From: Octopus sinensis
Lineage: Eukaryota
Direction: 5' to 3'
Assembly: GCF_006345805.1 (NCBI RefSeq)
Contig: NC_043004.1
Coordinates: 71,114,001 to 71,178,000, forward strand
Length of the DNA stretch: 64,000 bases
Numbering within the stretch: the stretch's first letter is position 1; the number at the start of each line of letters is the position of its first letter. This document shows, in pieces, positions 4,036-33,420 of this stretch. The notes below the pieces were generated by a model, which had not been told where the DNA came from, made no database searches, and saw nothing but the letters and a program-made list of their open reading frames with translations. Both the position numbers and the translations under genes were made by a program.

Positions 4036-4701
4036 TCTTTAAAAACCAAGTCCAGGATTTGATCCATATACGTCATTAGTGGCTCTCCATATTCGGTTCG
4101 ATAAATTAAGTACCAGTTACGGACTGGAGTCGATATAATCGACTTAATCCGTTTGTCTGTCTTTGTTTGTCCTCTCTGGGTTTAGCCCCTTGTGGGTAGT
4201 AAAGAAATAGGTTATTCAGAGCTTTCTCTTCAATCTGTCTGACGCACGCTTTTTGCATTTCATTCCATCTGTACACATTCTTCTACTGCTATTAAGTTTT
4301 TTCCACCCTGGTCTCACCTCAAGTACAGCCGGTTGACATCAACTTATGGATGGTGGGCTCCATACAAGTATCATCATCATCATCATCATCATCCTCATTA
4401 TCATTTTTATTATTATTATTATTATTATTATTATTATTATTATTATTATTATTACACATGGCTAAGGTGGTCGATTGGCGAGTGCGTCAAACAAAAATTC
4501 ATTTCTCTATTGTAATACGTCTCTTTATGTTTTGTGTTGCAATTTATATTTTAATTTTCATCCTTCTGGGTTCAGTAATATGAAATATCAATCAATAACT
4601 GATGTCTACTAACTATATCCCATCACTGCAAAACAATTTGTATTTGAGGTGATATATGTGTATGTTAGAAATTGTTGTTGTTGATGTTATTGTTATTGTA
4701 G

Positions 4702-4846
4702 GCAGTGGCTGCTCTGTTACACTACTTCCTTCTGACATCTCTCATGTGGATGGCTATCGAAGCATGTCACGTTTGCCTTGTTACCGTAATTGTATTTAAA
4801 ACATACCAGTCACATTTTATCCCGAAGAGTTCAATTTTGTCATGGG
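4702..4846 (+). CDS. aGPCR left copy exon (TM3 to start of TM4)
   Basis: ttgtag|GCA GTG GCT...TGG G|gtaagt; AVAALLHYFLLTSLMWMAIEACHVCLVTVIVFKTYQSHFIPKSSILSW. Confidence 0.8.
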
Positions 4847-5337
4847 GTAAGTTAAATCTAGATTATAAAGAAATAGATTCTCAGGTTGGCCATTAGGGCA
4901 ACATAAGATTACTTTCATTTTCCCGCAAAGAGTTTCAGTCTAATCTCATCTCTAGAAAAAAAAGCTAAGAGTTATTCATTTTGTACTTTCACCTGGCGCA
5001 ACAACTAATTTGAGAAGAGGTTCATGAGCACGACTTTTTGTTGTTTTTATTTGATTAACCAGAAATTGCAGTAATTTTAAGTTTTGTTTCCCAGTAAAAC
5101 ATATCATTGATAGAATCGAAGATATACACCAGTCGTACTTACTAATAAAAACCAAAGGAGTAAATTGTAAAAAGTGACCTGGGTACATCAAAATGAATAT
5201 TGATATCTTTTGAAGTAGACATTTTTCTCTAAATAAAACATGGTCAACTAAATCGATTTAAATGTCACTTATTTATGAGTTTAAATATTGACTAATATCT
5301 ACATATGTTTCTTCCTTTCTGTAAATGTCCTTGCCAG

Positions 5338-31500: not shown

Positions 31501-33060
31501 CTGAATGTTGGCTGGACCTTAAAAACTCCATACACACAGGTCCTGAGGACAAATGGTATCTTGAATGGCGATGATGCATAAGCACCAGTTACATTGGACT
31601 GAGCATCTTATTAGAGTGAAGGATAGCAGGATCCCTAAACAGATGCTATATGGGGAACTTGCGAATGGAAAGAGACCCCGGCAGTAACTGAGGCTGCGAT
31701 TTAAAGACTGTGTCATGTTCTCATTAAAGGCCTGTAGTATGCAGGAGACTGACTGGGAGAACAATGCCTGTCATCTCCAAAGATGGAGGAAGCATGTTAA
31801 GGAGGGGTCGAAACTTTTGAGACAGCACAGATTCTGCATTAAGCACTTTAGCGTGCTGATCGAAAGTGCACTGCTGTGTAGTGAATGGGGAAAGTTTGTT
31901 CTGCTACGTTTGCTGTCGTGTATGCTTGTCAAGAGTGCTCATTAGCCACAAACGGAGCCTCAAATGCAAATTATAAGTTAGTCCTAGGTCGTATAATGTT
32001 CCTGAAGGTCAGAAATGGTCTTTTTTAGCTCAGGAGTGGAGGGCCATCAAGTATATATCTAAACACACACACACACACACACACACACACACACACACAA
32101 ATATACGTGTGTGTATGTGTAGGTAGTATCTATGTGTATGTGCGTGTGTGTGTATGCATTTTAGTATATGTTACCCCTATCATCAATGGAGATCTTGCTT
32201 TAGCTTGATGCTAATGTATCCACCATTCTTCGTTGTTCAGATCATAAATAAATCTTGCAAATTATTAGTTGTGGAGAGCAGAGAAAATTTGGTGAATAAA
32301 ACGTATAAATACTTACACTTGTGCGTGTTCAATTCTAATGTAATTGTTTGTGTAGTTAATTGCCAGAGTAATTGTGACAATGACAGCTGGAAGACCTGAC
32401 AAGGACATTTACAGAAAGGAAGAAACATATGTAGATATTAGTCAATATTTAAACTCATAAATAAGTAACATTTAAATCGATTTAGTTGACCATGTTTTAT
32501 TTAGAGAAAAATGTCTACTTCAAAAGATATCAATATTTATTTTGATGTACCCAGGTCACTTTTTACAATTTACTCCTTTGGTTTTTATTAGTAAGTACGA
32601 CTGGTGTATATCTTCGATTCTATCAACGATATGTTTTACTGGGAAACAAAACTTAAAATTACTGCAATTTCTGGTTAATCAAATAAAAACAACAAAAAGT
32701 CGTGCTCATGAACCTCTTCTTAAATTAGTTGTTGCCTCAGGTGAAAGTACAAAATGAATAACTCTTAGCTTTTTTTTCTAGAGATGAGATTAGACTGAAA
32801 CTCTTTGCGGGAAAATGAAAGTAATCTTATGTTGCCCTAATGGCCAACCTGAGAATCTATTTCTTTATAATCTAGATTTAACTTAAAAATATGACATCTT
32901 GTTTCAGCTACTTACCCCATGACAAAATTGAACTCTTCAGGATAAAATGTGACTGGTATGTTTTAAATACAATTACGCTAACAAGGCAAACGTGACATGC
33001 TTCGACAGCCATCCACATGAGAGATGCCAGCAGGAAGTAGTGTAACAGAGCAGCCACTGC
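28499..33060 (-). CDS. Adhesion GPCR-like (ADGRG-type) gene, 3' half, right copy with open frame; exons 32916-33060, 32317-32395, 29732-30123, 28499-28533
   Basis: Spliced frame is open: AVAALLHYFLLASLMWMAVEA...SWGLPAV...VCWLSEIPFYAAFLAP...LFFLFGLSWVFAFF...FQGTFIFLFYCIYKKDTR...SSGDGTAEMNT*. Canonical splice sites. Upstream exons not identified in the window. Confidence 0.82.
29732..30123 (-). CDS. aGPCR right copy exon (TM5-TM7)
   Basis: 392 bp, open (within ORF 29667-30116), with AG acceptor and gtaagt donor. Confidence 0.85.
30966..31205 (+). mobile_element. SINE-like insertion present only in the right arm, with ~20-bp TSD-like flanks
   Basis: Flanked by tatatgcatacttatatgtg and tatatgcatacatatatgtg. 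The left arm has a single equivalent motif near 6490-6515. Confidence 0.75.
31250..31990 (+). mobile_element. Degraded RTE fragment, mirror of 5750-6475
   Basis: Near-identical reverse complement. Confidence 0.8.
32317..32395 (-). CDS. aGPCR right copy exon (TM4 to ECL2)
   Basis: 79 bp, identical to 5338-5416. Confidence 0.82.
32916..33060 (-). CDS. aGPCR right copy exon (TM3)
   Basis: 145 bp; AVAALLHYFLLASLMWMAVEACHVCLVSVIVFKTYQSHFILKSSILSW. Confidence 0.82.
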
Positions 33061-33420
33061 CTACAATAACAATAACATCAACAACAACAATTTCTAACAT
33101 ATACATATATCACCTCAAATACAAATTGTTTTACAGGGATGGGATATAATTAGTAGACATCAGTTATTGATTGATATTTTATATTACTGCCCCAGAAGGA
33201 GGAAAATTAAAATTGAAATTTCGAAACAAAACATAAAGAGACGTATTACAATAGAGAAATGAATTTTTGTTTGACGCACTCGCCAATCGACCACCTTAGC
33301 CATGTGTAATAATAATAATAATAATAATAATAATAATAATGATAATAATAATAATAATAAAAATGATAATAATGATAATAATGATAATAATAATAATAAT
33401 AATAATAATAATAATAACAA

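Follow-up and report, generated by a model that had tools for sequence, protein, structure and literature searches.

A mosaic identity profile points to repeated gene conversion between old inverted adhesion-receptor paralogs in Octopus sinensis

For the inverted hsp70Aa/Ab pair of Drosophila, Bettencourt and Feder are said to have described interlocus gene conversion in 2002, and converted duplicate pairs in Caenorhabditis elegans were reportedly described by Semple and Wolfe in 1999. Inverted pairs persist because crossovers between them invert the spacer instead of deleting it. Arm-to-arm gene conversion is also documented for sex-chromosome palindromes, namely P1-P8 of the human Y chromosome and those of the primate and mouse X, whose arms exceed 8-10 kb at more than 99% identity and in which cross-species comparison shows ongoing conversion (PMC8600007, PMC8327919, bioRxiv 10.1101/800185). 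Here we analyse a 64,000-nucleotide stretch of the Octopus sinensis genome (CM016866.1:71114001-71178000 of GCA_006345805.1), which we call the window and which contains no Ns. It holds two inverted genes predicted to be adhesion-type G-protein-coupled receptors (GPCRs), a left copy L on the plus strand and a right copy R on the minus strand. Our analysis indicates that they are old paralogs, and we think it likely that they have undergone repeated non-allelic gene conversion on one chromosome.

Like the inverted hsp70 and C. elegans pairs, L and R are linked inverted copies in which the presumed tract comprises the gene and little flank and ends abruptly, the flanks retain older divergence, and introns and silent sites are homogenised too. 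Unlike in those pairs, the octopus copies are degenerate, the tract is long (~6 kb) and apparently layered (at least three ages), and no recent activity is detectable. With the sex-chromosome palindromes the locus shares inverted arms, a unique spacer, genes of an expanded family and an identity seemingly kept by non-reciprocal exchange. However, although its arms are inverted around a unique spacer of 10.65 kb, it falls short of a large palindrome with arms of at least 8-10 kb at more than 99%: L-R identity exceeds 99% across 1.8 kb only, the entire high tier is 5-6 kb long, and no conversion after the species split considered below is seen.

The gene family offers a further comparison. Octopus-specific expansions of class B (adhesion/secretin) GPCRs, in tandem clusters and with positive selection, are reported in the passages considered of Ritschard et al. 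2019 (PMC6408891); as far as those passages go, the genes resemble ours, which are 7tm_2 adhesion-type, have close relatives in Octopus only and are locally duplicated. The word "inverted" is absent from the text of that paper, "gene conversion" occurs in it once outside those passages, and the O. sinensis locus is not treated. Open reading frames (ORFs) of both arms match Pfam 7tm_2, and the protein search returned Octopus adhesion GPCRs only; judged by these matches, both genes are 7tm_2 adhesion GPCRs of an octopus-specific expansion. They are convergent, that is tail-to-tail, L ending at 10493 (+) and R at 28499 (-), with stop codons 18.0 kb apart.

A seeded repeat search and a BLAST comparison of the window with itself showed that positions 4369-10569 (+) match the reverse complement of 33392-28423 far above chance. 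An earlier note on this DNA had placed the near-identical segments at ~4455-10580 and ~28420-33310, which these limits confirm, except that the block is itself a mosaic. Its two-tier profile fares less evenly, since the sharp step stands but maximum-likelihood segmentation of the 6460 ungapped aligned L-R columns gives at least three tiers (Table 1). The claimed 9 substitutions and 1 indel in 651 coding bp are exact for exons 2-5 (five substitutions in exon 2, four in exon 4, and one 1-bp indel, 650/651 bp), and the introns, as had also been noticed, match like the exons, the gaps being insertions private to one arm.

Table 1. Positions of the inverted arms, their identity tiers, exons, insertions and spacer (window coordinates unless L001, the sequence upstream of the window, is named; HSP, high-scoring segment pair; TM, transmembrane helix; LINE and SINE, long and short interspersed nuclear element)
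Feature	Left or single position	Right position	Strand or orientation	Remarks
Homogenised block, left arm	4369-10569		+	part of intron 1 to ~80 bp beyond stop
Homogenised block, right arm		28423-33392	-	reverse complement of left block
Gapped HSP 1	4369-6510	33392-31203	inverted	BLAST/self-search
Gapped HSP 2	6918-7391	30914-30454	inverted	BLAST/self-search
Gapped HSP 3	8531-11457	30473-27559	inverted	BLAST/self-search; runs unbroken through identity step
Gapped HSP 4	14266-14595	27510-27203	inverted	BLAST/self-search
Gapped HSP 5	14541-15332	26709-25986	inverted	BLAST/self-search
Identity tier	4369-4629			91.5%, 22/260 mismatches; mainly microsatellite, with 125 bp at ~90%
Identity tier	4630-5849			98.4%, 19/1220 mismatches; holds exons 2-3
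Identity tier	5850-8764			94.0%, 81/1350 mismatches
Identity tier	8765-10569			99.2%, 15/1805 mismatches; holds exons 4-5
Identity tier	10570-15332			83.8%, 296/1825 mismatches
Identity break	10521-10574	28418-28472	+	3' flank; no repeat, no indel there
Left 3' old tier	10570-11457	28422-27559	+	84% against right
Left 3' old tier, continued	14266-15332		+	73-78% by BLAST; final ~270 bp (15062-15332) dispersed repeat
Right 3' old tier		25986-28422	-	right-only dispersed-repeat insertion inside, 26733-27207
Right 5' old tier		37082-37736	-	TM2 exon (37551-37444) plus flanking intron
Exon 1 (TM2)	L001 12332-12457	37551-37444	right -	left exon outside window
Exon 2 (TM3)	4702-4846	33060-32916	left +, right -	
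Exon 3 (TM4)	5338-5416	32395-32317	left +, right -	
Exon 4 (TM5-7)	8878-9268	30123-29732	left +, right -	left frameshifted
Exon 5 (C-terminus, stop)	10459-10493	28533-28499	left +, right -	
Frameshift	8957-8961		+	1-bp, in TM5; T5 run in left exon 4 vs T6 in right (alignment 8957-8962)
Left-only (ATA)n expansion	6548-7015			
Left-only insertion	7392-8530		.	1.1 kb; (TA)n plus dispersed repeat 7465-8106
Left-only insertion	11458-14265		.	2.8 kb within 3' old tier; Pif1/Helitron fragment 13656-14057 (+)
Right-only SINE-like insertion		30973-31205	.	
LINE-like insertion, right intron 1		33422-37080	+	long ORFs 33418-36744; parts block from 5' old tier
Spacer	15333-25985		.	10.65 kb, non-homologous

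At the 3' end of the block L-R identity steps from 99.2% to 84% within the short interval listed in Table 1, 30-80 bp past the left stop codon (10491-10493), much where an abrupt drop had been claimed (~10580/28420, ~90 bp past the stop). Mismatches fall at 10446 and 10520, then at 10574, 10577, 10600, 10610 and onward at ~16%, which amounts to 15/1805 before the break against 137/855 from 10574 on (Fisher p = 1e-53); a smooth identity gradient in place of a breakpoint was looked for in the L-R alignment and not seen. As was also claimed, colinear homology continues inward past the break, to 15332/25986 at lower identity, part of it being dispersed repeat. Since a single HSP (HSP 3) spans the break, the low tier belongs to the same homologous unit and is no separate repeat.

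These observations bear on a simpler account, a single recent ~6-kb inverted duplication whose ends abut transposons of the same family, so that the supposed old tier would be two copies of a transposable element (TE), possibly the substrate of the rearrangement. It is true that the inner low tier is partly dispersed repeat (15062-15332, 26009-26253, 26733-27207) and that both intron-1 edges of the block adjoin TE insertions and a (TAA)n microsatellite. However, the segment 10570-11296 occurs once in the 85 kb examined and has its counterpart, by orthology or paralogy, in the 3' flank of the genes on the unplaced scaffold VCDQ01005339.1, which makes it gene flank rather than TE; the 5' low tier holds a homologous TM2 coding exon with splice sites and intron; and a single duplication cannot yield three identity levels within the block. 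We regard such an event as very improbable.

The 5' low tier just mentioned aligns right positions 37736-37082 with 12171-12825 of L001, which is 21 kb fetched upstream of the window, at 78% (521/667; 79% in the multiple alignment). This part of L001 lies 8.2-8.8 kb upstream of window position 1 and comprises the left TM2 exon with ~100 bp of intron before it and ~360 bp after it. If the short intron 1 at the paralogous locus is taken as reference, what separates the 5' old tier from the block is a 3.7-kb LINE-like insertion in R and ~12 kb of insertions in L. Because older homology, including non-coding sequence, is found on both sides of the block, R is an old, 5'-truncated inverted duplicate and not a young one.

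How would an uninvolved copy of the gene behave across the same positions? VCDQ01005339.1 bears the closest paralogs, P0013 and P0002, and is colinear with both arms through introns and 3' flank; we call the paralog on this scaffold S. Between 10000-10569 and 10570-10800, L-R identity falls from 0.995 to 0.85, while L-S identity is 0.818 and 0.80. The flat L-S profile across the break implies that the step reflects the history of L and R and not local mutation rate or constraint. Compared with S, the tract (9500-10569) has 197 sites shared by L and R, 5 unique to R and 1 unique to L; the corresponding counts are 76, 54 and 28 in the 3' flank (10570-11300) and 41, 79 and 30 in the 5' exon region. 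In the latter region the identity of L to S (86.2%) exceeds that of L to R (79.2%), whereas in the tract L-R identity is 99% and L-S identity 74-82%. Discordance of this kind between segments is to be expected if conversion was layered over an old pair of paralogs. The locus combines an embedded, abruptly bounded segment of high identity, the lack of a step against a third homolog and discordance between tract and flank, which are the marks of a conversion tract.

The same comparison speaks to purifying selection, which might keep coding and regulatory sequence of an old duplicate alike while the flanks drift, and which would suit the fact that each of the two youngest tiers contains exons (2-3; 4-5). 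However, introns, microsatellite flanks and a dead LINE reverse-transcriptase fragment common to both arms (6222-6548 = 31205-31489) are conserved like the exons, and against the paralogous locus these positions reach no more than 73-82% identity. Besides, L carries a frameshift in two species, and R is a truncated copy. Moreover, 8 of the 9 coding substitutions between L and R are non-synonymous, and with the introns and LINE fragment homogenised as well, selection cannot account for the high tier; we give this explanation next to no credence.

The O. vulgaris left-arm locus (L006 44479-57818) corresponds to window 2033-15394 at 98.97%, with the same boundaries, the same T5 frameshift and the same tiered profile against R. 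L006 stops at the equivalent of window 15394, ~10 kb short of the right arm, and the protein database searched has no annotated O. vulgaris entry that corresponds to the right copy. Over most segments the left copies of the two species are 99.6-100% identical, the exceptions being two short segments rich in repeats (97-98.5%). Of the 15 L-R differences in the 99.2% tier, 13 are common to the O. vulgaris left arm, 5 sites being specific to the O. vulgaris left copy and 2 to that of O. sinensis; a change from FQG to FQR in L is likewise O. sinensis-specific. As 13 of 15 arm differences already exist in O. vulgaris, the youngest conversion predates the split of the two species. Here the expectation that arms within a species would be closer than orthologs between species failed, for the left arms are 99.6% alike and L and R 99.2% at best, though this comparison covers a very recent split only. 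Relative to the species divergence (~0.35-0.4%) and assuming a clock, the tiers would be roughly 2, 4 and 15 times older, and the old tiers more than 40 times.

The O. vulgaris data also bear on whether the near-identity is biological at all. The assembly, presumably built from PacBio and Hi-C data, might have joined in inverted orientation two haplotypes or a paralog that had been collapsed or wrongly polished, and indeed the 0.8% difference in the 99% tier is comparable to heterozygosity, the frameshift lies in a homopolymer, and the unplaced scaffold VCDQ01005339.1 has 19-kb inverted arms at 98.4%. Mis-joined haplotigs should show uniform, haplotype-level identity with homology lost at the ends; the profile here is tiered and the flanks are homologous. 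Identity falls to 84% inside one colinear alignment that has neither gap nor N, the outer TM2-exon region at 78-79% is unlike haplotypes, and private TE insertions set the arms apart. Moreover, the left arm recurs in the independent O. vulgaris assembly with its boundaries and T5 frameshift, and the 13 shared arm differences are fixed in both species. An artefact of this kind we hold to be highly unlikely.

The proposal of the earlier note, an old inverted duplication whose receptor segment was later homogenised, is borne out by the flanking low tiers, the flat paralog control, the homogenised introns and the segment discordance; the alternative it offered, a second recent duplication laid over an older paralog, does not stand apart, being mechanistically equal to the same homologous replacement. 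How could a mosaic like this have arisen? L and R would have started as old tail-to-tail adhesion-GPCR paralogs, R being 5'-truncated, and would have diverged to ~78-85% before one was overwritten by the other through intrachromosomal conversion, the likely route being a double-strand break in one arm whose repair copied the inverted arm. The replaced segment would begin within intron 1 and end ~30-80 bp beyond the stop. We infer at least two or three events and, from the tier levels, at least three conversion ages rather than one: an older event would have spanned the whole 6-kb block, now at ~94%, and younger ones exons 2-3 (98.4%) and exons 4-5 (99.2%). The two youngest tracts flank the intron-3 region with its arm-private insertions, which would fit tracts limited by heterology, and the 5' edge may lie where the large intron-1 insertions, the 3.7-kb LINE in R and the ~12 kb in L, put an end to homology.

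Several points weigh against repeated conversion. At the 5' edge of the block lie TE insertions that keep a clean identity step from being read there, the data favour neither arm as donor or acceptor, and the right arm is known from one assembly only. In the comparison of the left arms, no conversion after the O. sinensis/O. vulgaris split is detectable. Finally, there is no clear GC-biased signature; the change in GC content across the break (37% vs 27%), considered as a trace of GC-biased conversion, proved uninformative, since the paralogous locus likewise has 36% vs 31%.

In what state are the two genes? Upstream of the window, in L001, L carries GAIN-like exons, the GPS motif CSCDHLTSFALLM, TM1 and the TM2 exon, all of which lie outside the homogenised block. 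The 1-bp frameshift in its exon 4 recurs in the O. vulgaris ortholog (L006 about 51360), and an origin as PacBio homopolymer error is ruled out because the O. vulgaris assembly has the same T5 run; judged by its reading frame, L is a pseudogene in both species. The NCBI model of L, XP_036361342.1, translates through the frameshift into ~100 out-of-frame residues and a spurious C-terminus. Exons 2-5 of R form an open frame identical at 100% to XP_029639913.1 (O. sinensis "ADGRG2-like isoform X2"). R begins ~160 bp upstream of its TM2 exon, no TM1 or GPS exon of R was found ahead of TM2 within the window, and each of its three NCBI isoforms begins at a Met inside the TM2 exon. An ORF with an ATG at ~4458 was considered as first exon on the strength of a TM2-like 7tm_2 match (E = 1e-3, below the cut-off) and rejected, since NCBI models and paralogs put TM2 elsewhere. 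Neither L nor R combines GAIN/GPS with seven helices in an open frame, and on this evidence neither copy encodes a complete receptor. The conversion looks neutral, given that L is frameshifted, R lacks GAIN/GPS/TM1 exons and the post-conversion differences are almost all non-synonymous.

The NCBI models of L (XP_036361342.1) and of R isoform X3 skip the same 10 codons of exon 2 (IEACHVCLVT / EACHVCLVSV; 4750-4790 and 32970-33010), which suggests either a 30-nt alternative intron or RNA-seq reads cross-mapped between the near-identical arms. More generally the models need care, XP_036361342.1 for its spurious C-terminus and XP_029639913.1 and the other isoforms for lacking TM1 and GAIN/GPS.

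Gene conversion as a process is well known, and the locus is a further instance, between two defective copies, that leaves knowledge of it unchanged. What it provides is a clean, well-bounded case, from a cephalopod genome, of apparently layered non-allelic conversion within a lineage-specific octopus GPCR expansion of the sort often tied to sensory novelty. Since segments of one gene differ in history, whole-gene identity is unfit for estimating paralog ages or ratios of non-synonymous to synonymous substitution (dN/dS) in this family.

The scaffold VCDQ01005339.1 (73,261 bp) holds a second tail-to-tail pair, P0013 at 6151-19941 (+) and P0002 at 55351-38405 (-), with stops 18.5 kb apart compared with 18.0 kb in the window. 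Its arms (record 1-22060 vs 58330-33459), at least 19 kb long, match at 98.4% over 1-18887 vs 58330-39359 and decay toward the spacer, to 95.3% (18927-21185) and 80% (21147-22060); the scaffold end cuts one arm, and an assembly problem is possible there. The O. vulgaris ortholog of this pair lies on a different chromosome and aligns colinearly with one arm and part of the spacer. For a third family member, at the P0007 locus, no inverted partner was found within 10 kb on either side. That the tail-to-tail arrangement is a recurrent or ancestral palindrome architecture of the octopus adhesion-GPCR family, maintained by conversion, we hold to be improbable. On that reading, and if convergent or read-through transcription spans both arms, such loci would also yield multi-kb RNA hairpins, which could serve endogenous small interfering RNA (endo-siRNA) production or the heavy ADAR editing that is typical of cephalopods.

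The spacer is, as the earlier note had it, ~10 kb of transposon-filled sequence, with RVT_1 (LINE) matches at 15267-16604 (+) and 18342-18836 (-), LINE-like ORFs to 21864 and a Pif1/Helitron fragment at 24356-24921 (-). This fragment and the one at 13656-14057 (+) are diverged, opposite in orientation and unalignable as DNA, and the two Pif1-helicase (Helitron-like) fragments are probably independent insertions. The dispersed repeat of the inner low tier (15062-15332/26253-25986, and right-only at 26733-27207) has further copies at 7465-8106, 22501-22728 and 63315-63955. Members of a SINE-like family of ~180-230 bp occur at 1296-1998 (a 3-4 unit tandem), 4095-4207, 30973-31205 and 57943-58129; ARAGORN detected no tRNA-like head on them.

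Beyond the arms, 40000-48000 is satellite- or microsatellite-like at 11-18% GC with large internal repeats (40143-41479 vs 42735-44079 at 87.5%; zero-spacer inverted repeats at ~46651-47112). It is followed at 48280-49825 by a tandem array of ~600-bp units 89-95% alike, a relative of which (78-83%) lies at L001 11632-12173, directly upstream of the left old-tier boundary. The 509-bp segment 53874-54382 is its own reverse complement at 82%, a perfect-centre palindrome that may be a foldback element or resemble a miniature inverted-repeat TE (MITE). In a 1.1-kb direct repeat (37693-38774 vs 46663-47753, 90%) a microsatellite adjoins the 3' portion of a LINE reverse-transcriptase element (RVT_1 38285-39499). 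Finally, 38079-39675 has a 97% copy in O. vulgaris at L006 7128-8731, ~20 kb upstream of the aligned region of the left gene, so that this LINE family looks young.

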